DNA of 64,000 nucleotides from Macrostomum hystrix (Eukaryota > Animalia > Platyhelminthes): contig CATNEN010000038.1 of the NCBI GenBank assembly GCA_950097015.1, forward strand, positions 3,596,001 through 3,660,000, written 5' to 3'. Below, piece by piece: positions 1-43,772 of this stretch. Position numbers and translations under genes: made by a program. The first letter of the stretch is position 1. Every line of letters begins with the position of its first letter. The notes beneath the pieces were generated by a model. The model made no database searches and was not told the DNA's origin. It saw only the letters and a program-made list of their open reading frames with translations.

Positions 1-3000
1 GTCGCGTCTCGGAGTTGTAGACCCTCGAGTCCCCCCCACTCTGATATCTCCCATTTTAAAAGTACTTTTCGTCACCTCACTGAATCTGGTGGTCAAAAGA
101 AGCTGAAAACTCAGATCTGGAAGGAAACAATATCTGTGAACACGGCTGTAAAATTTCAGAGCCCTGACTAGTCGCGTCTCGGAGTTGTAGACCCTCGAGT
201 CCCCCCCACTCTGATATCTCCCATTTTAAAAGTACTTTTCGTCACCTCACTGAATCTGGTGGTCAAAAGAAGCTGAAAACTCAGATCTGGAAGGAAACAT
301 TATCTGTGAACACGGCTGTAAAATTTCAGAGCCCTGACTAGTCGCGTCTCGGAGTTGTAGACCCTCGAGTCCCCCCCACTCTGATATCTCCCATTTTAAA
401 AGTACTTTTCGTCACCTCACTGAATCTGGTGGTCAAAAGAAGCTGAAAACTCAGATCTGGAAGGAAACATTATCTGTGAACACGGCTGTAAAATTTCAGA
501 GCCCTGACTAGTCGCGTCTCGGAGTTGTAGACCCTCGAGTCCCCCCCACTCTGATATCTCCCATTTTAAAAGTACTTTTCGTCACCTCACTGAATCTGGT
601 GGTCAGACGAGGCTAAAAACTCAGATCTGGAAGGAAACATTATCTGTAAACACGGCTGTAAAATTTCAGAGCCCTGACTAGTCGCGTCTCGGAGTTGTAG
701 ACCCTCGAGTCCCCCCCACTCTGATATCTCCCATTTTAAAAGTACTTTTCGTCACCTCACTGAATCTGGTGGTCAGACGAGGCTAAAAACTCAGATCTGG
801 AAGGAAACATTATCTGTAAACACGGCTGTAAAATTTCAGAGCCCTGACTAGTCGCGTCTCGGAGTTGTAGACCCTCGAGTCCCCCCCACTCTGATATCTC
901 CCATTTTAAAAGTACTTTTCGTCACCTCACTGAATCTGGTGGTCAAAAGAAGCTAAAAACTCAGATCTGGAAGGAAACATTATCTGTAAACACGGCTGTA
1001 AAATTTCAGAGCCCTGACTAGTCGCGTCTCGGAGTTGTAGACCCTCGAGTCCCCCCCACTCTGATATCTCCCATTTTAAAAGTACTTTTCGTCACCTCAC
1101 TGAATCTGGTGGTCAAAAGAAGCTGAAAACTCAGATCTGGAAGGAAACATTATCTGTGAACACGGCTGTAAAATTTCAGAGCCCTGACTAGTCGCGTCTC
1201 GGAGTTGTAGACCCTCGAGTCCCCCCCACTCTGATATCTCCCATTTTAAAAGTACTTTTCGTCACCTCACTGAATCTGGTGGTCAGACGAGGCTAAAAAC
1301 TCAGATCTGGAAGGAAACATTATCTGTAAACACGGCTGTAAAATTTCAGAGCCCTGACTAGTCGCGTCTCGGAGTTGTAGACCCTCGAGTCCCCCCCACT
1401 CTGATATCTCCCATTTTAAAAGTACTTTTCGTCACCTCACTGAATCTGGTGGTCAAAAGAAGCTGAAAACTCAGATCTGGAAGGAAACATTATCTGTGAA
1501 CACGGCTGTAAAATTTCAGAGCCCTGACTAGTCGCGTCTCGGAGTTGTAGACCCTCGAGTCCCCCCCACTCTGATATCTCCCATCTTAAAAGTACTTTTC
1601 GTCACCTCACTGAATCTGGTGGTCAGACGAGGCTAAAAACTCAAATCTGGAAGGAAACATTATCTGTAAACACGGCTGTAAAATTTCAGAGCCCTGACTA
1701 GTCGCGTCTCGGAGTTGTAGACCCTCGAGTCCCCCCCACTCTGATATCTCCCATTTTAAAAGTACTTTTCGTCACCTCACTGAATCTGGTGGTCAAAAGA
1801 AGCTGAAAACTCAGATCTGGAAGGAAACATTATCTGTGAACACGGCTGTAAAATTTCAGAGCCCTGACTAGTCGCGTCTCGGAGTTGTAGACCCTCGAGT
1901 CCCCCCCACTCTGATATCTCCCATTTTAAAAGTATTTTTCGTCACCTCACTGAATCTGGTGGTCAGACGAGGCTAAAAACTCAGATCTGGAAGGAAACAT
2001 TATCTGTAAACACGGCTGTAAAATTTCAGAGCCCTGACTAGTCGCGTCTCGGAGTTGTAGACCCTCGAGTCCCCCCCACTCTGATATCTCCCATTTTAAA
2101 AGTACTTTTCGTCACCTCACTGAATCTGGTGGTCAGACGAGGCTAAAAACTCAGATCTGGAAGGAAACATTATCTGTAAACACGGCTGTAAAATTTCAGA
2201 GCCCTGACTAGTCGCGTCTCGGAGTTGTAGACCCTCGAGTCCCCCCCACTCTGATATCTCCCATTTTAAAAGTACTTTTCGTCACCTCACTGAATCTGGT
2301 GGTCAAAAGAAGCTAAAAACTCAGATCTGGAAGGAAACATTATCTGTAAACACGGCTGTAAAATTTCAGAGCCCTGACTAGTCGCGTCTCGGAGTTGTAG
2401 ACCCTCGAGTCCCCCCCACTCTGATATCTCCCATTTTAAAAGTACTTTTCGTCACCTCACTGAATCTGGTGGTCAAAAGAAGCTGAAAACTCAGATCTGG
2501 AAGGAAACATTATCTGTGAACACGGCTGTAAAATTTCAGAGCCCTGACTAGTCGCGTCTCGGAGTTGTAGACCCTCGAGTCCCCCCCACTCTGATATCTC
2601 CCATTTTAAAAGTACTTTTCGTCACCTCACTGAATCTGGTGGTCAGACGAGGCTAAAAACTCAGATCTGGAAGGAAACATTATCTGTAAACACGGCTGTA
2701 AAATTTCAGAGCCCTGACTAGTCGCGTCTCGGAGTTGTAGACCCTCGAGTCCCCCCCACTCTGATATCTCCCATTTTAAAAGTACTTTTCGTCACCTCAC
2801 TGAATCTGGTGGTCAAAAGAAGCTGAAAACTCAGATCTGGAAGGAAACATTATCTGTGAACACGGCTGTAAAATTTCAGAGCCCTGACTAGTCGCGTCTC
2901 GGAGTTGTAGACCCTCGAGTCCCCCCCACTCTGATATCTCCCATCTTAAAAGTACTTTTCGTCACCTCACTGAATCTGGTGGTCAGACGAGGCTAAAAAC

Positions 3001-5672
3001 TCAAATCTGGAAGGAAACATTATCTGTAAACACGGCTGTAAAATTTCAGAGCCCTGACTAGTCGCGTCTCGGAGTTGTAGACCCTCGAGTCCCCCCCACT
3101 CTGATATCTCCCATTTTAAAAGTACTTTTCGTCACCTCACTGAATCTGGTGGTCAAAAGAAGCTGAAAACTCAGATCTGGAAGGAAACATTATCTGTGAA
3201 CACGGCTGTAAAATTTCAGAGCCCTGACTAGTCGCGTCTCGGAGTTGTAGACCCTCGAGTCCCCCCCACTCTGATATCTCCCATTTTAAAAGTATTTTTC
3301 GTCACCTCACTGAATCTGGTGGTCAGACGAGGCTAAAAACTCAGATCTGGAAGGAAACATTATCTGTAAACACGGCTGTAAAATTTCAGAGCCCTGACTA
3401 GTCGCGTCTCGGAGTTGTAGACCCTCGAGTCCCCCCCACTCTGATATCTCCCATTTTAAAAGTACTTTTCGTCACCTCACTGAATCTGGTGGTCAGACGA
3501 GGCTAAAAACTCAGATCTGGAAGGAAACATTATCTGTAAACACGGCTGTAAAATTTCAGAGCCCTGACTAGTCGCGTCTCGGAGTTGTAGACCCTCGAGT
3601 CCCCCCCACTCTGATATCTCCCATTTTAAAAGTACTTTTCGTCACCTCACTGAATCTGGTGGTCAAAAGAAGCTGAAAACTCAGATCTGGAAGGAAACAT
3701 TATCTGTGAACACGGCTGTAAAATTTCAGAGCCCTGACTAGTCGCGTCTCGGAGTTGTAGACCCTCGAGTCCCCCCCACTCTGATATCTCCCATTTTAAA
3801 AGTACTTTTCGTCACCTCACTGAATCTGGTGGTCAGACGAGGCTAAAAACTCAGATCTGGAAGGAAACATTATCTGTGAACACGGCTGTAAAATTTCAGA
3901 GCCCTGACTATTCGCGTCTCGGAGTTGTAGACCCTCGAGTCCCCCCCACTCTGATATCTCCCATTTTAAAAGTACTTTTCGTCACCTCACTGAATCTGGT
4001 GGTCAAAAGAAGCTGAAAACTCAGATCTGGAAGGAAACATTATCTGTGAACACGGCTGTAAAATTTCAGAGCCCTGACTAGTCGCGTCTCGGAGTTGTAG
4101 ACCCTCGAGTCCCCCCCACTCTGATATCTCCCATTTTAAAAGTACTTTTCGTCACCTCACTGAATCTGGTGGTCAGACGAGGCTAAAAACTCAGATCTGG
4201 AAGGAAACATTATCTGTGAACACGGCTGTAAAATTTCAGAGCCCTGACTATTCGCGTCTCGGAGTTGTAGACCCTCGAGTCCCCCCCACTCTGATATCTC
4301 CCATTTTAAAAGTACTTTTCGTCACCTCACTGAATCTGGTGGTCAAAAGAAGCTGAAAACTCAGATCTGGAAGGAAACATTATCTGTAAACACGGCTGTA
4401 AAATTTCAGAGCCCTGACTAGTCGCGTCTCGGAGTTGTAGACCCTCGAGTCCCCCCCACTCTGATATCTCCCATCTTAAAAGTACTTTTCGTCACCTCAC
4501 TGAATCTGGTGGTCAAAAGAAGCTGAAAACTCAGATCTGGAAGGAAACATTATCTGTGAACACGGCTGTAAAATTTCAGAGCCCTGACTAGTCGCGTCTC
4601 GGAGTTGTAGACCCTCGAGTCCCCCCCACTCTGATATCTCCCATTTTAAAAGTACTTTTCGTCACCTCACTGAATCTGGTGGTCAAAAGAAGCTGAAAAC
4701 TCAGATCTGGAAGGAAACAATATCTGTGAACACGGCTGTAAAATTTCAGAGCCCTGACTAGTCGCGTCTCGGAGTTGTAGACCCTCGAGTCCCCCCCACT
4801 CTGATATCTCCCATTTTAAAAGTACTTTTCGTCACCTCACTGAATCTGGTGGTCAAAAGAAGCTGAAAACTCAGATCTGGAAGGAAACATTATCTGTGAA
4901 CACGGCTGTAAAATTTCAGAGCCCTGACTAGTCGCGTCTCGGAGTTGTAGACCCTCGAGTCCCCCCCACTCTGATATCTCCCATTTTAAAAGTACTTTTC
5001 GTCACCTCACTGAATCTGGTGGTCAAAAGAAGCTGAAAACTCAGATCTGGAAGGAAACATTATCTGTGAACACGGCTGTAAAATTTCAGAGCCCTGACTA
5101 GTCGCGTCTCGGAGTTGTAGACCCTCGAGTCCCCCCACTCTGATATCTCCCATTTTAAAAGTACTTTTCGTCACCTCACTGAATCTGGTGGTCAAAAGAA
5201 GCTGAAAACTCAGATCTGGAAGGAAACATTATCTGTGAACACGGCTGTAAAATTTCAGAGCCCTGACTATGCGCGTCTCGGAGTTGTAGACCCTCGAGTC
5301 CCCCCCACTCTGATATCTCCCATTTTAAAAGTACTTTTCGTCACCTCACTGAATCTGGTGGTCAGACGAGGCTAAAAACTCAGATCTGGAAGGAAACATT
5401 ATCTGTAAACACGGCTGTAAAATTTCAGAGCCCTGACTAGTCGCGTCTCGGAGTTGTAGACCCTCGAGTCCCCCCCACTCTGATATCTCCCATTTTAAAA
5501 GTACTTTTCGTCACCTCACTGAATCTGGTGGTCAAAAGAAGCTGAAAACTCAGATCTGGAAGGAAACATTATCTGTGAACACGGCTGTAAAATTTCAGAG
5601 CCCTGACTAGTCGCGTCTCGGAGTTGTAGACCCTCGAGTCCCCCCCACTCTGATATTTCCCATTTTAAAAGT
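1..5672 (+). repeat. 170-bp tandem satellite, left inverted arm (~33 copies visible)
   Basis: The unit gtcgcgtctcggagttgtag...gccctgacta recurs every 170 bp. Two main subtypes: ggtcaaaagaagctg and ggtcagacgaggcta. Confidence 0.98.
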
Positions 5673-6294
5673 GGGCACAACACAACACCCTCACTCTGAG
5701 ATGCCTGCGTATTTTTAGCGTTGAGTTGCGTAACATGTAGGGATGTAATGCGCAATTGGTAATACAGGGTAATATTTTTGCCTTGTCGTGCACATGGGTC
5801 TCAATTTTCGCATGTTGGATCTGATTTTTGCTATTTGTTTTTTTATTATTTGAAGTACTAATGCCCTCTTATGTTTGTCGGCTTTTGAGGCTTTAGCGTT
5901 TGAAGTTGAGTGTTGAGATTTCAAGCCTCGTGTTTTATAGTCTTCGCATTATTAAAAGCCTTCGTATTTTATAGTGACGATTGCGTATCCTCTATTGCAT
6001 TTAGTTCTTAGTGCTTTGTCCTTACGTTTTATCGCTAATGCCTGACAAAATAAGTGTTCTGGGGTGTGTACCGTGCTCTGTTTTACACTAGTAGCTGGAA
6101 TATCCAATCAGCTGCTTTATCTGCTTCTTGCTTGCTATCTCATATCCCTATCCGAACAACCCATGCATAAATTTTCGAGTATAAAGCCTTGAGGAAAGCA
6201 GATTTCAATCGTCTGCTAGTATATTCATATATTTTTAACCATGATTTTCAGTCTTCGCATCATCGCTTTACTTTCAATTTTCTTTATTTGCTAA

Positions 6295-8040
6295 GCAACC
6301 CACAATCGACGCATTTCTTTTTTTGAACTGTCGCCTGAATATTTTGAAGACTATAGTGATGAGTGCCTTGGCAAATCATTTCGCTGTCCCTATGGTGCTT
6401 GCGGGCAAATTCTGAGCAAGCTTTCAGCAAAGAACACTATTGAAAACCGTCGAGTTGTCTGGCTTTATTATCAGCGTAAAATTGTCGGTAAGTCAAAATC
6501 TTCTGTTTCGAAAAGAAAGAAAACTGCTAATCATAAATCTGCTGTGGTAAGATCCACTCGAGTTGCTGTTGCTGCTTCTGTTGTGCCTGGCCGTGGTGCT
6601 GTTGCTGCTTCTGTTGTGCCTGCTCGTCGTGCTGTTGCTGCTTCTGTTGTGCCTGCCCGGGGTGCTGTTGCTGCTTCTGTTGTGCCTGCTCGTCGTGCTG
6701 TTGCTGCTTCTGTTGTGCCTGCCCGGGGTGCTGTTGCTGCTTCTGTTGTGCCTGCTCGTCGTGCTGTTGCTGCTTCTGTTGTGCCTGCCCGGGGTGCTGT
6801 TGCTGCTTCTGTTGTGCCTGCCCGTGGTGCTGTTGCTGCTTCTGTTGTGCCTGCCCGTGGTGCTGTTGCTGCTTCTGTTTTGCCTGCTCGTCGTGCTGTT
6901 GCTGCTTCTGTTGTGCCTGCCCGGGGTGCTGTTGCTGCTTCTGTTGTGCCTGCTCGTCGTGCTGTTGCTGCTTCTGTTGTGCCTGCCCGGGGTGCTGTTG
7001 CTGCCTCTGTTGTGCCTGCTCGTCGTGCTGTTGCTGCTTCTGTTGTGCCTGCCCGGGGTGCTGTTGCTGCTTCTGTTGTGCCTGCCCGTGGTGCTGTTGC
7101 TGCTTCTGTTGTGCCTGCCCGTGGTGCTGTTGCTGCTTCTGTTGTGCCTGCCCGTGGTGCTGTTGCTGCTTCTGTTGTGCCTGCCCGTTGTGCTGTTGCT
7201 GCTTCTGTTGTGCCTGCCCGTGGTGCTGTTGCTGCTTCTGTTGTGCCTGCCCGTCGTGCTGTTGCTGCTTATGTGGGGCCTGCTCATGGAAGTAATGACG
7301 CTTGTGGTGATGATATGAGTGATTCTAGGAGTGGTGATGCTGGGAGTGATGATGCTGGGAGTGAGGATGCTGGGAGTGATGATGGTTGGAGTGATGATGC
7401 TGGGAGTGATGATGGTTGGAGTGATGATGCTGGGAGTGAGGATGCTGGGAGTGATGATGCTGGGAGTGAGGATGCTGGGAGTGATGATGCTGGGAGTGAG
7501 GATGCTGGGAGTGATGATGGTTGGAGTGATGATGCTGGGAGTGATGATTCAGAAGTAAGGGACTGTACTAATGCTGAAGTTGCTGTTGATTTCGAGAGTG
7601 GTGCAAGCGGATCAATAACTAATTTAGTTTTTCATTTTCGAATAGCTTGGAGCCAGTGGAAAAATAACTTTTTTATCAGGCGGGGAGAAAAAATGCATTC
7701 GATATGTCAGAGAACCGCTTTTTGGTGGCTAAACTGCATTCGTGAAAATTATCGACAATATTGCTCTTCGAATGTGGAAGCAAGTAACTGTGTTCTTAAA
7801 TTTAAGAATCGATATCTGAACTTTCCAAATCTCAGAGCACAAAAGCCAAAATATTTCGTAAAACAGGTCGCATTATGCCAGCATCCCGCATGCAAAATAG
7901 TACACGATTTTAGAATTATAGATTTTCCAACTGAAAATGAGCCTGTGGTGGTAGTTGTTAATTCTAAAGGTGAGAAGAATCATAATCATCCAACGATGTC
8001 TAGAATGACGCCATTAGAATCAGAAAGGATAGCAAATTGA
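6295..8040 (+). CDS. N-terminal part of the MULE/NOF-like transposase, with a zinc-finger-like C-x4-C...H-x-H region; start and exon structure uncertain
   Basis: The frame is open from 6295 to TGA 8040 (the ORF track starts at GTG 6544). The C-terminal part CVLKFKNRY...ALCQHPAC...GEKNHNH resembles the N-terminal zinc-finger region of Mutator-type transposases and runs into the next ORF via a frameshift near 8033-8040. Confidence 0.6.
   Translation, partial: ATHNRRISFFELSPEYFEDYSDECLGKSFRCPYGACGQILSKLSAKNTIENRRVVWLYYQRKIVGKSKSSVSKRKKTANHKSAVVRSTRVAVAASVVPGRGAVAASVVPARRAVAASVVPARGAVAASVVPARRAVAASVVPARGAVAASVVPARRAVAASVVPARGAVAASVVPARGAVAASVVPARGAVAASVLPARRAVAASVVPARGAVAASVVPARRAVAASVVPARGAVAASVVPARRAVAASVVPARGAVAASVVPARGAVAASVVPARGAVAASVVPARGAVAASVVPARCAVAASVVPARGAVAASVVPARRAVAAYVGPAHGSNDACGDDMSDSRSGDAGSDDAGSEDAGSDDGWSDDAGSDDGWSDDAGSEDAGSDDAGSEDAGSDDAGSEDAGSDDGWSDDAGSDDSEVRDCTNAEVAVDFESGASGSITNLVFHFRIAWSQWKNNFFIRRGEKMHSICQRTAFWWLNCIRENYRQYCSSNVEASNCVLKFKNRYLNFPNLRAQKPKYFVKQVALCQHPACKIVHDFRIIDFPTENEPVVVVVNSKGEKNHNHPTMSRMTPLESERIAN
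6563..7280 (+). repeat. 33-bp minisatellite (~21 copies; GAVAASVVPAR in the ORF frame)
   Basis: ggtgctgttgctgcttctgttgtgcctgcccgt repeated in tandem. Confidence 0.95.
7330..7548 (+). repeat. 15-bp minisatellite encoding acidic DAGSD/E repeats
   Basis: gatgctgggagtgat repeated ~14 times. Confidence 0.92.
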
Positions 8041-10366
8041 AACTGAAGCACCAACTGATGTACATGATAGACTACTCTCGGAAATGACAGATAAAGAGAT
8101 AAAGGAAAATGACTTTTCTCGATCAAAAAATTTGGATGCCATTCGGCGGGTAAACGCGAAGCGGTTGGTTGCCGCAGAAGAACGGCTGCATAAAAATGTT
8201 GAAGTCGAAATTGCTGCTTTGCAACGAATACTGAGCGAAACAGACACAGAGAGTAAGAGTATACGCGGATACATTCAAGCTGTGTCTCGCCATCCATTTC
8301 ATGTACATCTGTACCTCGAAAGACAGCTTAGACTTGTTACAAGTAGGCCGCAGTGTGTTTTACATCTAGATGCCACTGGAAGCATTTTCAAGAGAATGAA
8401 TTTCGCAGGTAGCCAAATATTTCTTTACTCGCTGACAATGCCCTCCGATAACGGTCAGACGCGTGGTGTGCCTGTGGCCGAAATGATAACAAGTGAGCAT
8501 AGGACCAAATCAATCCAACACTTTTTGTTTTCTGTCCGCGCAGATTTGGGCACACTAGCAAGCAGTACTATTATGTCGCATGACTATTTACCCGCTGTCA
8601 TCGTCACGGACTTCTCTTGGGCTATGTTACACTCGGTATGCCAGTCATTTGGCACCAGCTTAGAGCAATACCTTATTGATACGCATTGTGCGTTACGCAT
8701 GGGGAAACAAATCAAGTACACGATTCCATTCATTTGCACAAATCACGTAATCCGTGCGTTCATTAATGGCATACAACTAAAGTCTAAAACTGCGGAAGGT
8801 AAAGCTATGCGGGAATTATTTATTAGCGCATTTGTCTTTTTATTACATCAGGAGACTTTTGAAGCGTTTGAAACTACCTTGAGTCTCACTGTAGATACAT
8901 TTTTAGGGCAGCGAGATCCGAAAGAATTAAGATCAGCGATTAACAATTGGGAAACTGAGCCCGTGGACGAAGAATATTCGCTCTACAACGACGATGAAAT
9001 AAATAACGATAAGGAAGAGCAGGCCGAAAGTTCTCGATTTGCTTCTCTGCGCGAAGGCTCTCCGTACATTTTTCTTTTCAAGTCCCGACAGGCAAGTATT
9101 GATGCAACCGACGAGCCAGCCGGGCCATTTAAAAGCTATTACTCACCAAAACTGCTGGTTTACTTGCTGAAGCACTGGTGTAGTTTAGCTCCATTGTTCT
9201 GCCATTTCATCGGGAGTATCAAGAGCTTCAGAAAGAATAAAAGTTGGTTTTCAAACTCTTACGTAGAATCGTACTTTTCAGACGTTAAATCTCGAAAAAC
9301 AAGGTTCGGCAAGGCTTCCAGGGTGAACGTGTCGAGTTTTATTTGCGGACGGTTAAAATATTTAAAAACAAGATTAACAGCTTTCGACATAATCAACAAA
9401 GTAGGGAAAGCAACGTTATCTGGAAGGAAGAGAAAGCACGAAGATATTTCCTTTTCTCGCGAGGAGTGGCGAAGGGCCGAGCGGGTTAGTCGTTCAAAGT
9501 ACAAGCGACAGAGAACAGAATCAGCGACAAAGAATAGAAAGCAGCAAGGCACAGCAGAACGGGAACAGGTGTGGTGCACCCGCGCTGGAGACTTCCTAAC
9601 TGAGTTTGATAGAGAATCATTGGAACCCGGAAAGTGGCTTTCTGTCGGAATAGTAAATTCATTCATACATCTACTTTGCGTATGCAACCCAAGCAGCAAA
9701 GCGGGCCACCTACCATCCAGCTTCTTTAGCTGCATTCGCAAAGGAGATTCGAGCGCTGCGATTGACATGCTAAGAGCGACAGTTTCAAACAAATGCACCC
9801 GTTTAATCTGTCCGATTCTTCAGAACGACCACTTCTACTTAGTCTATATTGACACAACACGCAAAGAACTAGCTGTCCTAGACACAAAACCTATCTCAGA
9901 TAAGTCGATACCAAAACATTTTATAAAACTATGGCAAAACCTAATCAAAAGCACCACCAGTATTCGCGAAGACATGCCAGAAATTTTAGGTACGTATAAA
10001 AATAAATCAATGTTGAGATCATTGCAGTTTGATGGTCATAGCTGTGGTGTATTTGTCTGTCTGTACGCGAAAGTTCTAGTAACATCCGTTGATACCGAGT
10101 TCCGAGCTTTGTGCTTTCCAACAACGGAGGGATTTCTTAACAGAGCTCGAATCTGCATCTGGAAAGACTTGGAAAGAGAAAATGAAGAATCCACCAACTC
10201 GTGCGTTCGCTGTCATGAAGCTGAACCCAGTGCGACTGGAACTTGGCTGCAATGTGATCTTTGTGATTCATGGCTGCACCATGAGTGTGCATCGAAAGAT
10301 ATGCACCAGCGCCACGCGTCCAACGGCTACGTCTGCTGCTGTGCCGAGTACGCAGCAACGCGATAG
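8033..10366 (+). CDS. MULE/NOF-type DDE transposase fused to a Ulp1-like (C48) cysteine protease and a C-terminal PHD finger
   Basis: Transposase motifs: LHLDATGS (D1), IVTDFSWAM (D2), ICTNH (CxxH), SNSYVESYF (E). Basic NLS-like GRKRKH. Protease motifs: WLSVGIVNSF, NDHFYL (His), VLDT (Asp), LQFDGHSCGVF (Gln/Cys). PHD: CVRC...WLQCDLCDSWLHHEC...YVCCC. The frame is open from 8033; first ATG at 8084. Confidence 0.88.
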   Translation, partial: QIETEAPTDVHDRLLSEMTDKEIKENDFSRSKNLDAIRRVNAKRLVAAEERLHKNVEVEIAALQRILSETDTESKSIRGYIQAVSRHPFHVHLYLERQLRLVTSRPQCVLHLDATGSIFKRMNFAGSQIFLYSLTMPSDNGQTRGVPVAEMITSEHRTKSIQHFLFSVRADLGTLASSTIMSHDYLPAVIVTDFSWAMLHSVCQSFGTSLEQYLIDTHCALRMGKQIKYTIPFICTNHVIRAFINGIQLKSKTAEGKAMRELFISAFVFLLHQETFEAFETTLSLTVDTFLGQRDPKELRSAINNWETEPVDEEYSLYNDDEINNDKEEQAESSRFASLREGSPYIFLFKSRQASIDATDEPAGPFKSYYSPKLLVYLLKHWCSLAPLFCHFIGSIKSFRKNKSWFSNSYVESYFSDVKSRKTRFGKASRVNVSSFICGRLKYLKTRLTAFDIINKVGKATLSGRKRKHEDISFSREEWRRAERVSRSKYKRQRTESATKNRKQQGTAEREQVWCTRAGDFLTEFDRESLEPGKWLSVGIVNSFIHLLCVCNPSSKAGHLPSSFFSCIRKGDSSAAIDMLRATVSNKCTRLICPILQNDHFYLVYIDTTRKELAVLDTKPISDKSIPKHFIKLWQNLIKSTTSIREDMPEILGTYKNKSMLRSLQFDGHSCGVFVCLYAKVLVTSVDTEFRALCFPTTEGFLNRARICIWKDLERENEESTNSCVRCHEAEPSATGTWLQCDLCDSWLHHECASKDMHQRHASNGYVCCCAEYAATR

Positions 10367-10661
10367 CTGGATGGATGCACCAAGAAGTGCAGCGAAAAAA
10401 TGTACTCACACTAATTACTAAAAGCTACTTGCTTAAAAATAAAATGTCAATTCTGTAGTTTTTGTTATAACAACAAGTCAATTCTGTAAACAATTATGGC
10501 ACCGCTTTGCAATGTAAAACTGTGAATAATCTAAGCTGCAAAATATTATAAGACATATGTAAAATAGTGGCCTTTGTGTGACACAGAAACACTAATACGA
10601 ACAAAAACCTTAAAAAATAAACAAAAATCTTCTAACACCGAACTTAAAATATATTAAAGAC

Positions 10662-10724
10662 TTTGTGAAAAACTCTGCCTTAGCCAGTCCCAAGCCTGGT
10701 TTCAAAAAGAGGAGGGCTCACGAA
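10662..10724 (+). ncRNA. Twister ribozyme (P1 type, no P3 stem)
   Basis: tttgtga-aaaa-CTC-TGCC-tta-gCCAG-TCCCAAGC-CTGG-tttcaaaaa-GAG-GAGGG-c-tcacgaa fits the twister layout. Stems: P1 tttgtga/tcacgaa, P2 CTC/GAG, P4 CCAG/CTGG. Pseudoknots: CCC:GGG and GC:GC. Confidence 0.82.
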
Positions 10725-10825
10725 AAATATACCAAAAGCAAATCTTAAATTATATTCAGTAAAATCAAACAAAAAAACTACAAAAAATACAGACTACAAA
10801 AACAATAGCTCCTTCGAAACCTCAT

Positions 10826-13800
10826 TTTTCAGCTTCTTTTGACCACCAGATTCAGTGAGGTGACGAAAAGTACTTTTAAAATGGGAGATATCAGAGTGGG
10901 GGGGACTCGAGGGTCTACAACTCCGAGACGCGAATAGTCAGGGCTCTGAAATTTTACAGCCGTGTTCACAGATAATGTTTCCTTCCAGATCTGAGTTTTT
11001 AGCTTCTTTTGACCACCAGATTCAGTGAGGTGACGAAAAGTACTTTTAAAATGGGAGATATCAGAGTGGGGGGGGACTCGAGGGTCTACAACTCCGAGAC
11101 GCGACTAGTCAGGGCTCTGAAATTTTACAGCCGTGTTTACAGATAATGTTTCCTTCCAGATCTGAGTTTTTAGCCTCGTCTGACCACCAGATTCAGTGAG
11201 GTGACGAAAAGTACTTTTAAAATGGGAGATATCAGAGTGGGGGGGACTCGAGGGTCTACAACTCCGAGACGCGAATAGTCAGGGCTCTGAAATTTTACAG
11301 CCGTGTTCACAGATAATGTTTCCTTCCAGATCTGAGTTTTCATCTTCTTTTGACCACCAGATTCAGTGAGGTGACGAAAAGTACTTTTAAAATGGGAGAT
11401 ATCAGAGTGGGGGGGACTCGAGGGTCTACAACTCCGAGACGCGACTAGTCAGGGCTCTGAAATTTTACAGCCGTGTTCACAGATAATGTTTCCTTCCAGA
11501 TCTGAGTTTTCAGCCTCGTCTGACCACCAGATTCAGTGAGGTGACGAAAAGTACTTTTAAAATGGGAGATATCAGAGTGGGGGGGACTCGAGGGTCTACA
11601 ACTCCGAGACGCGACTAGTCAGGGCTCTGAAATTTTACAGCCGTGTTCACAGATAATGTTTCCTTCCAGATCTGAGTTTTCAGCTTCTTTTGACCACCAG
11701 ATTCAGTGAGGTGACGAAAAGTACTTTTAAAATGGGAGATATCAGAGTGGGGGGGACTCGAGGGTCTACAACTCCGAGACGCGACTAGTCAGGGCTCTGA
11801 AATTTTACAGCCGTGTTCACAGATAATGTTTCCTTCCAGATCTGAGTTTTCAGCTTCTTTTGACCACCAGATTCAGTGAGGTGACGAAAAGTACTTTTAA
11901 AATGGGAGATATCAGATTGGGGGGGACTCGAGGGTCTACAACTCCGAGACGCGACTAGTCAGGGCTCTGAAATTTTACAGCCGTGTTCACAGATAATGTT
12001 TCCTTCCAGATCTGAGTTTTTAGCCTCGTCTGACCACCAGATTCAGTGAGGTGACGAAAAGTACTTTTAAAATGGGAGATATCAGAGTGGGGGGGGACTC
12101 GAGGGTCTACAACTCCGAGACGCGACTAGTCAGGGCTCTGAAATTTTACAGCCGTGTTCACAGATAATGTTTCCTTCCAGATCTGAGTTTTCAGCTTCTT
12201 TTGACCACCAGATTCAGTGAGGTGACGAAAAGTACTTTTAAAATGGGAGATATCAGAGTGGGGGGGACTCGAGGGTCTACAACTCCGAGACGCGACTAGT
12301 CAGGGCTCTGAAATTTTACAGCCGTGTTTACAGATAATGTTTCCTTCCAGATCTGAGTTTTTAGCTTCTTTTGACCACCAGATTCAGTGAGGTGACGAAA
12401 AGTACTTTTAAAATGGGAGATATCAGAGTGGGGGGGACTCGAGGGTCTACAACTCCGAGACGCGACTAGTCAGGGCTCTGAAATCTTACAGCCGTGTTCA
12501 CAGATAATGTTTCCTTCCAGATCTGAGTTTTCAGCTTCTTTTGACCACCAGATTCAGTGAGGTGACGAAAAGTACTTTTAAAATGGGAGATATCAGAGTG
12601 GGGGGGACTCGAGGGTCTACAACTCCGAGACGCGACTAGTCAGGGCTCTGAAATTTTACAGCCGTGTTCACAGATAATGTTTCCTTCCAGATCTGAGTTT
12701 TCAGCTTCTTTTGACCACCAGATTCAGTGAGGTGACGAAAAGTACTTTTAAAATGGGAGATATCAGATTGGGGGGGACTCGAGGGTCTACAACTCCGAGA
12801 CGCGACTAGTCAGGGCTCTGAAATTTTACAGCCGTGTTCACAGATAATGTTTCCTTCCAGATCTGAGTTTTTAGCCTCGTCTGACCACCAGATTCAGTGA
12901 GGTGACGAAAAGTACTTTTAAAATGGGAGATATCAGAGTGGGGGGGACTCGAGGGTCTACAACTCCGAGACGCGACTAGTCAGGGCTCTGAAATTTTACA
13001 GCCGTGTTCACAGATAATGTTTCCTTCCAGATCTGAGTTTTCAGCTTCTTTTGACCACCAGATTCAGTGAGGTGACGAAAAGTACTTTTAAAATGGGAGA
13101 TATCAGAGTGGGGGGGACTCGAGGGTCTACAACTCCGAGACGCGAATAGTCAGGGCTCTGAAATTTTACAGCCGTGTTCACAGATAATGTTTCCTTCCAG
13201 ATCTGAGTTTTCATCTTCTTTTGACCACCAGATTCAGTGAGGTGACGAAAAGTACTTTTAAAATGGGAGATATCAGAGTGGGGGGGACTCGAGGGTCTAC
13301 AACTCCGAGACGCGACTAGTCAGGGCTCTGAAATTTTACAGCCGTGTTCACAGATAATGTTTCCTTCCAGATCTGAGTTTTCAGCTTCTTTTGACCACCA
13401 GATTCAGTGAGGTGACGAAAAGTACTTTTAAAATGGGAGATATCAGAGTGGGGGGGACTCGAGGGTCTACAACTCCGAGACGCGACTAGTCAGGGCTCTG
13501 AAATTTTACAGCCGTGTTCACAGATAATGTTTCCTTCCAGATCTGAGTTTTCAGCTTCTTTTGACCACCGGATTCAGTGAGGTGACGAAAAGTACTTTTA
13601 AAATGGGAGATATCAGAGTGGGGGGGACTCGAGGGTCTACAACTCCGAGACGCGACTAGTCAGGGCTCTGAAATCTTACAGCCGTGTTCACAGATAATGT
13701 TTCCTTCCAGATCTGAGTTTTCAGCTTCTTTTGACCACCAGATTCAGTGAGGTGACGAAAAGTACTTTTAAAATGGGAGATATCAGATTGGGGGGGACTC

Positions 13801-16800
13801 GAGGGTCTACAACTCCGAGACGCGACTAGTCAGGGCTCTGAAATTTTACAGCCGTGTTTACAGATAATGTTTCCTTCCAGATCTGAGTTTTTAGCCTCGT
13901 CTGACCACCAGATTCAGTGAGGTGACGAAAAGTACTTTTAAAATGGGAGATATCAGAGTGGGGGGGACTCGAGGGTCTACAACTCCGAGACGCGAATAGT
14001 CAGGGCTCTGAAATTTTACAGCCGTGTTCACAGATAATGTTTCCTTCCAGATCTGAGTTTTCATCTTCTTTTGACCACCAGATTCAGTGAGGTGACGAAA
14101 AGTACTTTTAAAATGGGAGATATCAGAGTGGGGGGGACTCGAGGGTCTACAACTCCGAGACGCGACTAGTCAGGGCTCTGAAATTTTACAGCCGTGTTTA
14201 CAGATAATGTTTCCTTCCAGATCTGAGTTTTTAGCTTCTTTTGACCACCAGATTCAGTGAGGTGACGAAAAGTACTTTTAAAATGGGAGATATCAGAGTG
14301 GGGGGGACTCGAGGGTCTACAACTCCGAGACGCGACTAGTCAGGGCTCTGAAATCTTACAGCCGTGTTCACAGATAATGTTTCCTTCCAGATCTGAGTTT
14401 TCAGCTTCTTTTGACCACCAGATTCAGTGAGGTGACGAAAAGTACTTTTAAAATGGGAGATATCAGAGTGGGGGGGACTCGAGGGTCTACAACTCCGAGA
14501 CGCGACTAGTCAGGGCTCTGAAATTTTACAGCCGTGTTCACAGATAATGTTTCCTTCCAGATCTGAGTTTTCAGCTTCTTTTGACCACCAGATTCAGTGA
14601 GGTGACGAAAAGTACTTTTAAAATGGGAGATATCAGATTGGGGGGGACTCGAGGGTCTACAACTCCGAGACGCGACTAGTCAGGGCTCTGAAATTTTACA
14701 GCCGTGTTCACAGATAATGTTTCCTTCCAGATCTGAGTTTTTAGCCTCGTCTGACCACCAGATTCAGTGAGGTGACGAAAAGTACTTTTAAAATGGGAGA
14801 TATCAGAGTGGGGGGGACTCGAGGGTCTACAACTCCGAGACGCGACTAGTCAGGGCTCTGAAATTTTACAGCCGTGTTCACAGATAATGTTTCCTTCCAG
14901 ATCTGAGTTTTCAGCTTCTTTTGACCACCAGATTCAGTGAGGTGACGAAAAGTACTTTTAAAATGGGAGATATCAGAGTGGGGGGGACTCGAGGGTCTAC
15001 AACTCCGAGACGCGACTAGTCAGGGCTCTGAAATTTTACAGCCGTGTTCACAGATAATGTTTCCTTCCAGATCTGAGTTTTCAGCTTCTTTTGACCACCA
15101 GATTCAGTGAGGTGACGAAAAGTACTTTTAAAATGGGAGATATCAGATTGGGGGGGACTCGAGGGTCTACAACTCCGAGACGCGACTAGTCAGGGCTCTG
15201 AAATTTTACAGCCGTGTTCACAGATAATGTTTCCTTCCAGATCTGAGTTTTTAGCCTCGTCTGACCACCAGATTCAGTGAGGTGACGAAAAGTACTTTTA
15301 AAATGGGAGATATCAGAGTGGGGGGGACTCGAGGGTCTACAACTCCGAGACGCGACTAGTCAGGGCTCTGAAATTTTACAGCCGTGTTCACAGATAATGT
15401 TTCCTTCCAGATCTGAGTTTTCAGCTTCTTTTGACCACCGGATTCAGTGAGGTGACGAAAAGTACTTTTAAAATGGGAGATATCAGAGTGGGGGGGACTC
15501 GAGGGTCTACAACTCCGAGACGCGACTAGTCAGGGCTCTGAAATCTTACAGCCGTGTTCACAGATAATGTTTCCTTCCAGATCTGAGTTTTCAGCTTCTT
15601 TTGACCACCAGATTCAGTGAGGTGACGAAAAGTACTTTTAAAATGGGAGATATCAGAGTGGGGGGGACTCGAGGGTCTACAACTCCGAGACGCGACTAGT
15701 CAGGGCTCTGAAATTTTACAGCCGTGTTTACAGATAATGTTTCCTTCCAGATCTGAGTTTTTAGCCTCGTCTGACCACCAGATTCAGTGAGGTGACGAAA
15801 AGTACTTTTAAAATGGGAGATATCAGAGTGGGGGGGACTCGAGGGTCTACAACTCCGAGACGCGAATAGTCAGGGCTCTGAAATTTTACAGCCGTGTTCA
15901 CAGATAATGTTTCCTTCCAGATCTGAGTTTTCATCTTCTTTTGACCACCAGATTCAGTGAGGTGACGAAAAGTACTTTTAAAATGGGAGATATCAGAGTG
16001 GGGGGGACTCGAGGGTCTACAACTCCGAGACGCGACTAGTCAGGGCTCTGAAATTTTACAGCCGTGTTCACAGATAATGTTTCCTTCCAGATCTGAGTTT
16101 TCAGCCTCGTCTGACCACCAGATTCAGTGAGGTGACGAAAAGTACTTTTAAAATGGGAGATATCAGAGTGGGGGGGACTCGAGGGTCTACAACTCCGAGA
16201 CGCGACTAGTCAGGGCTCTGAAATTTTACAGCCGTGTTCACAGATAATGTTTCCTTCCAGATCTGAGTTTTCAGCTTCTTTTGACCACCAGATTCAGTGA
16301 GGTGACGAAAAGTACTTTTAAAATGGGAGATATCAGAGTGGGGGGGACTCGAGGGTCTACAACTCCGAGACGCGACTAGTCAGGGCTCTGAAATTTTACA
16401 GCCGTGTTCACAGATAATGTTTCCTTCCAGATCTGAGTTTTCAGCTTCTTTTGACCACCAGATTCAGTGAGGTGACGAAAAGTACTTTTAAAATGGGAGA
16501 TATCAGATTGGGGGGGACTCGAGGGTCTACAACTCCGAGACGCGACTAGTCAGGGCTCTGAAATTTTACAGCCGTGTTCACAGATAATGTTTCCTTCCAG
16601 ATCTGAGTTTTTAGCCTCGTCTGACCACCAGATTCAGTGAGGTGACGAAAAGTACTTTTAAAATGGGAGATATCAGAGTGGGGGGGACTCGAGGGTCTAC
16701 AACTCCGAGACGCGACTAGTCAGGGCTCTGAAATTTTACAGCCGTGTTTACAGATAATGTTTCCTTCCAGATCTGAGTTTTCAGCTTCTTTTGACCACCA

Positions 16801-19800
16801 GATTCAGTGAGGTGACGAAAAGTACTTTTAAAATGGGAGATATCAGAGTGGGGGGGACTCGAGGGTCTACAACTCCGAGACGCGACTAGTCAGGGCTCTG
16901 AAATCTTACAGCCGTGTTCACAGATAATGTTTCCTTCCAGATCTGAGTTTTCAGCTTCTTTTGACCACCAGATTCAGTGAGGTGACGAAAAGTACTTTTA
17001 AAATGGGAGATATCAGAGTGGGGGGGACTCGAGGGTCTACAACTCCGAGACGCGACTAGTCAGGGCTCTGAAATTTTACAGCCGTGTTCACAGATAATGT
17101 TTCCTTCCAGATCTGAGTTTTCAGCTTCTTTTGACCACCAGATTCAGTGAGGTGACGAAAAGTACTTTTAAAATGGGAGATATCAGATTGGGGGGGACTC
17201 GAGGGTCTACAACTCCGAGACGCGACTAGTCAGGGCTCTGAAATTTTACAGCCGTGTTCACAGATAATGTTTCCTTCCAGATCTGAGTTTTTAGCCTCGT
17301 CTGACCACCAGATTCAGTGAGGTGACGAAAAGTACTTTTAAAATGGGAGATATCAGAGTGGGGGGGACTCGAGGGTCTACAACTCCGAGACGCGACTAGT
17401 CAGGGCTCTGAAATTTTACAGCCGTGTTCACAGATAATGTTTCCTTCCAGATCTGAGTTTTCAGCTTCTTTTGACCACCAGATTCAGTGAGGTGACGAAA
17501 AGTACTTTTAAAATGGGAGATATCAGAGTGGGGGGGACTCGAGGGTCTACAACTCCGAGACGCGAATAGTCAGGGCTCTGAAATTTTACAGCCGTGTTCA
17601 CAGATAATGTTTCCTTCCAGATCTGAGTTTTCATCTTCTTTTGACCACCAGATTCAGTGAGGTGACGAAAAGTACTTTTAAAATGGGAGATATCAGAGTG
17701 GGGGGGACTCGAGGGTCTACAACTCCGAGACGCGACTAGTCAGGGCTCTGAAATTTTACAGCCGTGTTCACAGATAATGTTTCCTTCCAGATCTGAGTTT
17801 TCAGCTTCTTTTGACCACCAGATTCAGTGAGGTGACGAAAAGTACTTTTAAAATGGGAGATATCAGAGTGGGGGGGACTCGAGGGTCTACAACTCCGAGA
17901 CGCGACTAGTCAGGGCTCTGAAATTTTACAGCCGTGTTCACAGATAATGTTTCCTTCCAGATCTGAGTTTTCAGCTTCTTTTGACCACCGGATTCAGTGA
18001 GGTGACGAAAAGTACTTTTAAAATGGGAGATATCAGAGTGGGGGGGACTCGAGGGTCTACAACTCCGAGACGCGACTAGTCAGGGCTCTGAAATCTTACA
18101 GCCGTGTTCACAGATAATGTTTCCTTCCAGATCTGAGTTTTCAGCTTCTTTTGACCACCAGATTCAGTGAGGTGACGAAAAGTACTTTTAAAATGGGAGA
18201 TATCAGATTGGGGGGGACTCGAGGGTCTACAACTCCGAGACGCGACTAGTCAGGGCTCTGAAATTTTACAGCCGTGTTTACAGATAATGTTTCCTTCCAG
18301 ATCTGAGTTTTTAGCCTCGTCTGACCACCAGATTCAGTGAGGTGACGAAAAGTACTTTTAAAATGGGAGATATCAGAGTGGGGGGGACTCGAGGGTCTAC
18401 AACTCCGAGACGCGAATAGTCAGGGCTCTGAAATTTTACAGCCGTGTTCACAGATAATGTTTCCTTCCAGATCTGAGTTTTCATCTTCTTTTGACCACCA
18501 GATTCAGTGAGGTGACGAAAAGTACTTTTAAAATGGGAGATATCAGAGTGGGGGGGACTCGAGGGTCTACAACTCCGAGACGCGACTAGTCAGGGCTCTG
18601 AAATTTTACAGCCGTGTTTACAGATAATGTTTCCTTCCAGATCTGAGTTTTTAGCTTCTTTTGACCACCAGATTCAGTGAGGTGACGAAAAGTACTTTTA
18701 AAATGGGAGATATCAGAGTGGGGGGGACTCGAGGGTCTACAACTCCGAGACGCGAATAGTCAGGGCTCTGAAATTTTACAGCCGTGTTCACAGATAATGT
18801 TTCCTTCCAGATCTGAGTTTTCATCTTCTTTTGACCACCAGATTCAGTGAGGTGACGAAAAGTACTTTTAAAATGGGAGATATCAGAGTGGGGGGGACTC
18901 GAGGGTCTACAACTCCGAGACGCGACTAGTCAGGGCTCTGAAATTTTACAGCCGTGTTCACAGATAATGTTTCCTTCCAGATCTGAGTTTTCAGCCTCGT
19001 CTGACCACCAGATTCAGTGAGGTGACGAAAAGTACTTTTAAAATGGGAGATATCAGAGTGGGGGGGACTCGAGGGTCTACAACTCCGAGACGCGACTAGT
19101 CAGGGCTCTGAAATTTTACAGCCGTGTTCACAGATAATGTTTCCTTCCAGATCTGAGTTTTCAGCTTCTTTTGACCACCAGATTCAGTGAGGTGACGAAA
19201 AGTACTTTTAAAATGGGAGATATCAGAGTGGGGGGGACTCGAGGGTCTACAACTCCGAGACGCGACTAGTCAGGGCTCTGAAATTTTACAGCCGTGTTCA
19301 CAGATAATGTTTCCTTCCAGATCTGAGTTTTCAGCTTCTTTTGACCACCAGATTCAGTGAGGTGACGAAAAGTACTTTTAAAATGGGAGATATCAGATTG
19401 GGGGGGACTCGAGGGTCTACAACTCCGAGACGCGACTAGTCAGGGCTCTGAAATTTTACAGCCGTGTTCACAGATAATGTTTCCTTCCAGATCTGAGTTT
19501 TTAGCCTCGTCTGACCACCAGATTCAGTGAGGTGACGAAAAGTACTTTTAAAATGGGAGATATCAGAGTGGGGGGGACTCGAGGGTCTACAACTCCGAGA
19601 CGCGACTAGTCAGGGCTCTGAAATTTTACAGCCGTGTTCACAGATAATGTTTCCTTCCAGATCTGAGTTTTCAGCTTCTTTTGACCACCAGATTCAGTGA
19701 GGTGACGAAAAGTACTTTTAAAATGGGAGATATCAGAGTGGGGGGGACTCGAGGGTCTACAACTCCGAGACGCGACTAGTCAGGGCTCTGAAATTTTACA

Positions 19801-19828
19801 GCCGTGTTCACAGATAATGTTTCCTTCC
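10826..19828 (-). repeat. 170-bp tandem satellite, right inverted arm (~53 copies)
   Basis: Reverse complement of the left-arm unit, with a 170-bp period. Confidence 0.98.
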
Positions 19829-22133
19829 TTATCATTGCTCTCAGCTGTATATGATGTACGAGTAATAATCCTGCGAAGCGCAAAAGTGAGGTTGTATTTT
19901 TAGTTTTTTTGATGAAGGTTACGATGATTATAAAAGTAATAAATTATACAAACACATTTAATGAGGTGAGTTTTGAGTTGTGATTTTAGTAGTTGCGATA
20001 TTTAGTAAACCGCTTTTTGTATTCGTTTACTCAGTTGGTTGAGTAAATTTGTTTTATTCTATGAAAAAAATATATTAGAAAACGTTTTGTGAAAGTAAAC
20101 CATTTTTTGTGTGTTGTGCGCAAGTCCGTCGATATTTATCAATTTTATTCTCAATAATGATATTTTCGGACCGATATATAAGTATTTCATCTGTTAGAAG
20201 TCTTTTTATTAGTTGCTTGTCGATTTTTTGTTGGCTATAACATAATTTTTTTCTGGTACTGGTTCTGGTACTGGTTCTGGTACTGGAAGTATAGACGTGT
20301 TCAGCCAGTCACTTCCAGTGTTGTTTTCTTCATTTTTAAAATAGAAAGTGGAATTGCTGATTTTCTTTATGTAAGCTCCAAATAATATATATAGATGAGA
20401 TAGGCATAGGGCCTAGCTAGTTGCAATAGCTAGCCATCAGTATTCATCACTCTGAAAATTCTGCAAACTTTTAGATATTCCACTAAACCAAAATAGTGAA
20501 ATATGTTTTTTAATGTAGTAATTAAAGTGAATGTTAGTTTGTTTATTTAGAAAATAGAAAGTCCATGACTACAAAAACCCCACAATAGCTGTGATTGGCC
20601 CCAAGATTCCAAGAATGAGAAAATGTTGTCATCATAGTTGCCACTGCTGCGCTATTTTAGCTATTCTCAATTGCCTGCGCTATTGCGCTACTATTTGCAA
20701 AACATGACCAATTCTGCGCTGAAATGTGATTTCTGTCACAAGTTGAGCTTTATGCGATTGTTTTTCTCTCGCCAGACTGATTCTGTACATTGGAGGAGGG
20801 GCAGAGACTTCTAGAAATAACAAAGCTGTTACTTCTAGAAGTCTCTGGCTGCAGTAAACAAGTTTGTGCACTTCCATCTGCCCCTAAAAATGCCGGCCTC
20901 AACTTGCAGGGAAAACAGTAGTCATTGCTGTGCCTTGCTTGCGGGTCCAGTCGTTATTTCTAGAAGACTCTGGAGGAGGGGTTGCAGTTAGATTGCCGAC
21001 CCCTGGTGTAACCCCATGTTTATTTTGACGCTTCTCTTACCCCAACTTTAAAGTCAAACGCCACAGCTCACTTGCTATTGGCTGGGCTGTGAATCTCTCC
21101 CTCGTCCACTTTTCTACCCAAAGACTAAAAAGGATTAAGGCCTACCCCATGGATGTCTTCTGTCTGGATTTCTTCCCCCTCCCTTTATACTTAAAACCCT
21201 TCTGAGACAAATCAATTTTTTGCTAAAAAATAAACAGGTTTCTTATTCAGTGCACATTAATTTATGCTGCCTTTTGCTGTCATTGTCTGGATGACAGACA
21301 GTAAGAGGGAGAGAAAGAAGCAGTTGGGCGTGGGCGGGGGCCTGGGCAGCAAAGGGGGTCACATATATCGCATGTTTTGTCATTTGGGTGAACCTGCGCT
21401 ATTTTTACCTTTCTGCGCTACTAATTTCTTCACGACCTGTGGCAACTATGGTTGTCATATTCCCTGCTTTTTGAATTGGCTCTGTGTTTCAGTATTTGGT
21501 TTTATGTTTTTACTTTTTAGGCAAAGTTTATACTGTAGCTAGACCCCGGTAGTTATATTTATTGTTAACAACCAAATAAGTAGGAAAACAAGGTTTAACA
21601 TGGCCTAACAAGGTTTTAAAGTTAACTGTTGTCTTTTATATAGACCACAATAATAAATATGCTATGCAAGAGATGTTAATAAACAGGCATACAAATAGAA
21701 CAGATAAGACTAACTAAAGGATTTCTAATTAAGAATCAAAGTTTTCGTAAAAATCGGCCTAATTTTTATAGAATTGGTTAGCTGTAGATAGATAAACAGG
21801 GCTATATAAATAGATTTTTATTCCTAAAAGTAGGCCCCATTAAACTGTAGCTTATTGTTTCATTTATTACTGTCATAGCAAATTTTCAGTTGTACATCAA
21901 ATTTTGGCATATACTAAGTACCTGAGACAACATTTAAATTGAGTTTCTGTATGTTACAGTCAAAAATAAGTTATTTCACTTTCATTTGCATGGCTAAAGT
22001 CCTGGAATCCATTATGAATATTTTTTAGGTATTGATCTCAATCCAGTGCCCTACCCTATGTAAGATTAATCTGAGTCATTTTCTATCATTGGTATTGACC
22101 TTGCAGCTGTTTATCTAGCTTTGGAGTTAAGCC

Positions 22134-43400: not shown

Positions 43401-43772
43401 GATAGTCACTGGCCTAAATTCGATGGTCACTGGCCTGAAGTTAATTAGTCACTGGCCTGAAGTTCGATAGTCACTTGCCTGAGGAGGTAGGACTCACTCA
43501 CAAAGCACGAGCCTGAATTTCGATGGTCAGTGGCCTGAAGTTGGTAGGTCACTGGCCTAAATTCGATGGTCACTGGCCTGAAGTTCGATGGTCACTTGCG
43601 TGAAGGTTTTTTCTTCACTGGCCTGAGGAGGTGCGACTCACTCACAAAGCACAAGCCTGAAGTTCGATGGTCACTGGCCTTAAGTTGGTAGGTCACTGGC
43701 CTGAAGTTCGATAGTCACTGGCCTGAGGAGGTGGGACTCATTCACAAAGCACGAGCCTGAATTTCGATGTCA
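34495..43772. repeat. 9.3-kb composite satellite: 22-bp monomer interspersed with a ~34-bp insert unit, with higher-order blocks
   Basis: ggtcactggcctgaagttcgat monomers punctuated by gcctgaggaggtaggactcactcacaaagcacga. Block duplications are visible, e.g. identical ORFs at 38668 and 39836. Confidence 0.97.

Follow-up and report, generated by a model that had tools for sequence, protein, structure and literature searches.

How two long arrays of a single 170-base-pair (bp) repeat came to face each other across a transposase-bearing core is the question raised by the first 20 kb of the stretch of 64,000 nucleotides of the Macrostomum hystrix genome analysed here (contig CATNEN010000038.1, C38:3596001-3660000), hereafter the window. 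An initial annotation had read the arrangement as a giant Foldback-like transposon comparable with Drosophila FB-NOF. Our analysis indicates that the window very probably holds a single copy, approximately 21.2 kb long, of a foldback-type DNA transposon that is present in multiple copies, moves by cut and paste and has 170-bp arrays in subterminal position. It is a striking case of an already known route for the origin and dispersal of satellites, in an element of a known kind.

Tandem Repeats Finder identified 33.4 copies of the unit at 1-5672 and 52.9 copies at 10826-19828, both with 97% matches, and the consensus of the second array is the reverse complement of that of the first. BLAST with a dimer of the unit gave plus units over 1-5672 and minus units over 10810-19828, and the sign of the GC skew is opposite in the left and right arrays. 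All three analyses confirm the annotated flip of the arrays across a core of 5.1 kb, and the right arm, given as 9 kb, measures 9019 bp. The left array starts in the 10 kb directly upstream of the window (L031), at L031:9609, which is 392 bp before the first window position, and has 6064 bp or around 36 units in all. Beyond both arrays there is a non-satellite inverted repeat, in which 471 of 473 bases match (L031:9136-9608 and window 19829-20301). Because this unique inverted repeat lies further out, the arrays are subterminal, and they were rejected as the true termini. The annotated size of more than 20 kb is upheld, with a matching unique left terminus upstream, whereas the annotated end at 19846 has to be moved: the inverted repeat runs on to 20301, and the tip of the family (ACGTCTATAC...), located by comparison with the other copies, ends at 20298. 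In the window copy the inverted repeat is 3 bp longer than in the other copies (AAC/GTT; L031:9136-9138 and window 20299-20301), which may be due to chance or may be a trace of arm-to-arm copying reaching into the flank. The left AAC belongs to the flanking repeat. The order inward from the end is tip, three 12-bp direct repeats, about 430 bp more of unique inverted repeat, array and core. The features are, in window positions unless stated otherwise:

L031:9136-9608 (C38:3595136-3595608, outside the window): left unique terminal inverted repeat (TIR), 473 bp, an inverted match to the right TIR
1..5672 (plus 392 bp upstream), + strand: left-arm array of 170-bp units (Tandem Repeats Finder, BLAST)
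5673..10809, + strand: non-repeated core, matched end to end by other copies
6544-8040 and 8084-10366, + strand: open reading frames (ORFs) of the core
6564..7548, + strand: internal minisatellites within the 5' portion of the frame, differing in length among copies
6564-7283, + strand: minisatellite, 33-bp unit, 21.8 copies
7320-7548, + strand: minisatellite, 15-bp unit, 15.3 copies
7700..8037, + strand: Cys/His-rich N-terminal region, C-x4-C-x29-H-x-H, kept in relatives (consensus A.C....C ... G...H)
8084..9583, + strand: predicted DDE catalytic domain, RNase-H fold with a helical insertion
9596..10081, + strand: SENP/Ulp1-like cysteine protease domain (SENP2 catalytic domain 1tgz, E 1.9e-6)
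10190..10336, + strand: probable C-terminal PHD finger
10666..10720, + strand: Twister-P1-like motif, between the stop codon (300 nt away) and the right array (90 nt away)
10810..19828, - strand: right-arm array of inverted 170-bp units, 9019 bp, about 53 units
19829..20301, - strand: right unique TIR, 473 bp, with the family terminus ...GTATAGACGT ending at 20298
adjoining the tip: three 12-bp direct repeats, CCAGTACCAGAA on the inward-reading strand

At least ten near-full copies of the core, with 95-98% identity, lie on seven contigs (matches span query 1-5153). Every full core copy has inverted 170-bp units on both sides, so that the arrays form inverted pairs around the core at no fewer than ten loci, as the annotated layout implied; the junctions between core and arrays are identical in all copies, and no copy of the core free of satellite arms was found. 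Eight core-bearing copies with both ends assembled are 15.6-40.1 kb long and have arms of 3.3-25.9 kb, and copies on C27 and C28 extend past the contig ends. A single short-armed copy has 6.2 kb, and a coreless foldback of 2.9 kb (C38:17425441-17428385) consists of one end with 5 units and 6.6 units with the other end. Within the longest arms (12-26 kb), all 12 points sampled are satellite in the expected orientation. Summed over the element extents, the 170-bp unit makes up around 183 kb in all arms together, and a genome search with the unit returned about 35 candidate regions, with each listed match inside known elements. All of this satellite appears to be carried by transposons. The coding minisatellite region is itself amplified in two copies (C25:7162013-7163612 and C24:5482641-5485896), where core positions 892-1613 or 1615-1876 are matched many times in staggered fashion.

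Perfect 8-bp target-site duplications flank seven of the ten elements in which both flanks were read, and even elements as large as 40 kb retain them intact:

C34 element: tagaaaac
C38:19.47M element: ataaagtg
C31:1.84M element: aatattaa
C24:1.89M element: ccatattt
C24:6.02M element (40 kb): taagttag
C25 element: aaaaaatc
C38:17.43M element (coreless): gcctattg

The family belongs to the foldback class: its TIRs are long and contain tandem repeats (473 bp unique plus 3-26 kb of 170-bp units per arm), and its copies are dispersed with target-site duplications, coreless ones included. The core was also found in four public DNA runs of one study, under two organism labels, and contigs from these runs agree with the core sequence.

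The copy in the window is a defective member of this family. A 5-bp deletion after 8036 (site 8036..8037), private to this copy, splits the transposase frame into 6544-8040 and 8084-10366. ACTAC is present at the deletion site in four other aligned copies and in the contigs of all four public runs, and seven other copies have a single open frame of 1373-1748 codons. The annotation as an autonomous-type element is therefore right for the family and wrong for the window copy, whose autonomy is ruled out by the private frameshift. Likewise, the duplication expected around a transposon is a property of the family that this copy lacks: its flanks differ (aaccaaac on the left, gttcagcc on the right). 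The left flank (L031:8836-9135) comes from the interior of a high-copy repeat with 475 candidate copies of 97-99% identity, and the continuation of this repeat in other copies is missing from the unique right flank. The assembly was also searched by pattern for a reciprocal junction of the two flanks, and none was found. The mismatched flanks and the lack of a reciprocal junction indicate that one flank was deleted or exchanged. As judged from its sequence, the window copy is dead or non-autonomous and was recently disabled. The family, on the other hand, has probably been active recently, and the 99.8% identity between copies, the intact frames and the intact duplications are consistent with current mobility. 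The high-copy repeat of the left flank resembles a young high-copy transposon.

In the window copy the arms are not mirror images: they are of unequal length, their local higher-order patterns differ, the monomer variants follow each other in a different order, and the unit variant A at position 91 occurs in the right arm only. Two main unit variants are common to all copies, and identity is 97.4% within and 96.8% between copies. The coding regions of the C24:6.03M and C28 copies are 99.8% identical to that of the window copy, and the two arms measure 7.8 and 25.9 kb in C24:6.03M, 16.9 and 12.1 kb in C28 and 6.1 and 9.0 kb in the window. Near-identical coding regions with very different arms indicate that array length changes faster than sequence.

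In order to place the origin of the unit, a diverged sister element is informative. This element (C34:206074-212505, 6.4 kb) has a transposase 67% identical to that of the window family, a conserved tip, an 8-bp duplication (gtcttttt) and a 656-codon open frame; it contains internal minisatellites of 24 and 48 bp, and its right tip is without 5 bp (CTATA). Its two arms contain just 4 and 1.7 repeat units of 171 bp. In alignment with the 170-bp unit this repeat has 112 identical columns and a score of 34, where shuffles score -8.8 +/- 5.1, so the two are homologous. The few homologous units in the sister family show that the 170-bp satellite is an amplified version of a repeat that was the ancestral subterminal repeat of the transposon lineage. 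The number of units forms a series, from 2-4 in the sister family and 1-7 in short and coreless copies to 20-150 per arm in autonomous-type copies. This series, together with the apparent confinement of the satellite to transposons, establishes that evolution went from a transposon repeat towards a satellite, and one transposon lineage thus gives an unusually clean natural series of repeat amplification.

The encoded protein, estimated at about 1000 residues in full if translation begins at the first Met past the coding minisatellite, starts with the Cys/His-rich region, which is probably a zinc-finger DNA-binding domain. Its residue spacing alone would place it in the WRKY/FLYWCH-like type, and it has no Pfam match and no usable protein-atlas match. 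For the catalytic part, word-indexed homologue searches returned few matches, none with PF10551, and an exhaustive HMMER search returned 890 relatives, 245 of them below 1e-10; those that are named come from a sponge and from rotifers. D96, D176, C218-x2-H221 and N391-x3-E395 (codons 8369, 8609, 8735/8744 and 9266) are invariant in 59 aligned sequences. PF10551 at E 0.05 did not match the window protein or any of the 58 relatives, and a PDB sequence search with the alignment profile found no transposase. A single-sequence AlphaFold model of the 760-residue ORF was discarded (predicted local distance difference test, pLDDT, 34), and an alignment-based AlphaFold model of residues 1-500 was used (pLDDT 82; predicted template modelling score, pTM, 0.80). 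Its top structural matches are transposases with an RNase-H fold plus an insertion domain:

ISCth4 (IS256 family): Z 12.3, root-mean-square deviation (rmsd) 5.7 A over 258 residues
Drosophila P element: Z 11.4, rmsd 4.8 A over 246 residues
Hermes: Z 9.7, rmsd 6.6 A over 258 residues
RAG1: Z 8.6, rmsd 4.6 A over 284 residues

Profile-profile comparison (hhalign) with five PF10551 Mutator-like element (MULE) ORFs of the same genome aligned the D-D-CxxH region with a probability of up to 73% (P 3e-5), and reversed controls gave at most 0.4%. The top named protein-atlas clusters are all MULE. Traits of MULEs are also present, namely a DDE triad with CxxH after the second Asp, an N..E motif and an 8-bp duplication, MULE duplications being 8-11 bp long (PMC6446971). 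Together, alignment and model give moderate support to the assignment of the transposase as a distant Mutator-like DDE enzyme, in agreement with the annotated Mutator-type protein. A large animal transposase family (890 relatives) without a Pfam model merits a profile and a place in transposon classifications; it is often fused to deSUMOylase, deubiquitinase or PHD domains.

Two of these fusions are predicted in the window protein. The domain at 9596-10081 belongs to Peptidase C48 according to its sequence, as the catalytic His, Asp and Cys and the oxyanion-hole Gln are all present (HFYLVYID / LDT / QFDGHSCG aligned with HWSLVVID / LDS / QLNGSDCG), with a Pfam Peptidase_C48 score of 14.8 bits, below the cut-off. 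The match to the PHD finger is weak (PF00628 E 0.041, below the cut-off; PHD chains of the PDB at E 0.02-0.05), and eight of the 59 sequences have PF00628, the best at E 3e-8 and 34 bits, above the cut-off. Peptidase_C48 was found in seven of the 59 (best 7.7e-14) and UCH in five. In rotifer and other animal relatives UCH is fused in place of the SENP-like domain, which suggests that this transposase family has captured proteases of ubiquitin-like modifiers more than once. Plant KI-MULEs are Mutator-type elements with a captured C48 (Ulp1/SENP) protease gene; in contrast, the protease here is fused in frame to the transposase, the host is an animal, and some relatives have UCH instead.

The Twister-P1-like motif downstream of the ORF scored 40.5 bits (E 2.6e-7), against a gathering score of 67.2 (RF03160), and an Rfam scan of window 1-24000 at the gathering threshold gave no match. 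One hairpin is shortened, the conserved core nucleotides are present, and the motif is kept in all copies. In the sister element a twister-like motif lies at C34:211813, in the same relative place after the ORF. Similar motifs, which score 47.6 bits and so are likewise under the gathering threshold, lie approximately 150 nt past the stop of canonical PF10551 MULE ORFs and on the strand of the ORF, at the following positions:

C31:1237390-1237446 (L053:2526-2582)
C41:434739
C41:1438785
C1:3454706

A ribozyme after the transposase ORF may thus be a recurrent feature of Mutator-type elements in the Macrostomum hystrix genome.

Several results weigh against the explanation of the locus as a foldback transposon with a Mutator-like transposase and transposon-derived arrays. 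Three of the ten elements tested, the window copy included, have no duplication, and the element was found in none of the RNA runs searched. The 170-bp unit and the terminal 473 bp have no word of nine or more bases in common. The catalytic part has no Pfam transposase match in the window protein or in the 58 relatives, and a six-frame search of the genome with PF10551 matched other loci and none in these elements. Finally, the IS256 and P element structures are within one Z unit of each other, so the structural comparison supports the superfamily assignment only moderately. A foldback transposon of the same build could therefore belong to the P superfamily (Galileo-like) or to hAT instead of the Mutator/Rehavkus lineage, which we consider unlikely. 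The P element transposase is also the top Foldseek match, duplications of 8 bp are typical for P and hAT, and Galileo is reported to have long foldback-like inverted repeats (PMC3688188). However, Pfam found no THAP, P-element or hAT dimerisation domain in the window protein or the 58 relatives, and the D, D and CxxH residues and the named atlas neighbours are on the side of MULEs, as is the zinc-finger spacing of the WRKY/FLYWCH kind. The arrangement of the tip followed by 12-bp subterminal repeats also resembles that of the MULE Muta1.

The two other explanations concern the arrays. Transposons often insert into satellites, and the window copy, without a duplication and with a high-copy repeat as its left flank, could on its own pass for a host satellite locus hit by a transposon core, or for an inverted duplication of a satellite block. 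This is very improbable, because every copy has identical junctions between core and arrays, the arrays at loci on seven contigs are enclosed by unique inverted repeats and 8-bp duplications, the sister family has its 4 and 1.7 homologous units in the equivalent position, and no array was seen outside elements among the listed matches of the unit search. A collapsed or mis-joined palindrome would be another source of such an inversion, as long inverted satellite arrays are difficult to assemble and short-read contigs break within them. The layout, however, is repeated at ten or more independent loci with different flanks, the two arms are unlike in length and variant order, and a contig from an independent run spans the junction of the core and the right array (10525-10853); an assembly artefact is therefore excluded for practical purposes.

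In the foldback transposon favoured here, the product of one long frame would combine a zinc-finger region with a distant Mutator-like DDE transposase, followed by a SENP/Ulp1-like protease and a PHD finger. Insertion yields 8-bp target-site duplications. From knowledge of related families, the enzyme would recognise the tip and the 12-bp repeats and carry out cut-and-paste transposition. The arrays would lengthen or shorten independently in each arm by unequal exchange or replication slippage, and the long inverted arms would promote rearrangement. In Muta1 of Aedes aegypti, more subterminal repeats lead to more transposase binding and excision (PMC5499845), and by analogy the arrays could be extra transposase-binding or end-pairing sequence. 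An adaptive reading takes this further and sees working features instead of passive by-products in three parts of the element: the arrays would offer the zinc-finger transposase many sites on which to land, the twister-like ribozyme would cleave the transposase mRNA ahead of the inverted right arm, and the SENP-like protease and PHD finger would act on the chromatin of the element. We regard it as doubtful that the three parts hold jointly, and the roles of protease, PHD finger and ribozyme are speculative; that of the ribozyme gains support from the twister-like motifs after canonical MULE stop codons. If true, these parts would keep an element of 15-40 kb that is prone to form hairpin RNA mobile, seeding new satellite loci.

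Among known systems, FB-NOF of Drosophila melanogaster has tandem-repeat inverted arms, an optional coding core and many coreless copies, and is associated with rearrangements. Repeats of 10, 20 and 31 bp make up its arms all the way to the tips, and its duplications have 9 bp. The annotated likeness to FB-NOF holds for the foldback layout; the description of FB sets it apart from the present family, with its unique 473-bp ends, 170-bp unit and 8-bp duplications, and Rehavkus and Tetris are closer. Both have a unique end, then repeats of around 160-220 bp, then the core, as in the window family. Rehavkus, compared here through published descriptions rather than sequence, is among the closest known elements. 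Rehavkus-1_TC and Rehavkus-3_TC of Tribolium are DNA transposons grouped with or beside MULEs; the former has a satellite unit of 164 bp, the latter up to 50 monomers, and one Tribolium Rehavkus repeat has grown into an 80-kb array (PMC6446971, PMC10218199, bioRxiv 10.1101/2024.12.02.626372). Inverted termini of more than 11 kb surround TfSat06 in Tribolium Rehavkus (bioRxiv 10.1101/2024.12.02.626372). With such large satellite arms already published, the suggestion of an undescribed system had to be dropped. Rehavkus has a PHD finger in its transposase, and the window protein a probable one, with a PF00628 match below the cut-off. There are differences nevertheless: the duplications of Rehavkus are reported as 9 bp, against 8 bp in the sister family and in all seven duplicated elements here; arms of the present family grow to about 150 monomers (26 kb), against up to 50 in Rehavkus-3_TC; and Rehavkus is reported from insects and annelids, the present host being a flatworm. 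The SENP/Ulp1-like protease and the twister-like motif are not mentioned in the cited Rehavkus descriptions.

Tetris of Drosophila virilis likewise has a unique flank, tandem repeats of approximately 220 bp and an inner part, with 8-9-bp duplications, and its repeats seed satellite arrays (PMC4079207). It is non-autonomous, with inverted repeats of up to 1.7 kb, whereas the window family has autonomous-type copies, and its satellite is also arrayed outside the element, whereas the 170-bp unit was seen only within elements. Muta1 and Phantom MULEs share with the window family duplications of 8-9 bp and a terminal motif with subterminal tandem repeats of 12 bp behind it, and Muta1, classed as a type 2 foldback element, also has an N-terminal zinc finger and a DDE domain (PMC5499845). 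Muta1 differs in its size of 3.2 kb, its 145-bp inverted repeats and its Pfam MULE match, and it has no protease, PHD finger or satellite-size unit.

Elsewhere in the window, minisatellites with periods of 12-46 bp are exceptionally abundant in the region 25196-61986; a degenerate 22/44-bp array of 9.2 kb occupies 34505-43726, and an array of a 99-bp unit lies at 49434-50628. A single-exon ORF at 22134-23435, with a GC content of 0.59, encodes an Nsp1_C nucleoporin domain (E 2.1e-11), and the best named relative of this Nsp1-like ORF is from Macrostomum lignano, with 62% identity over a quarter of the query.

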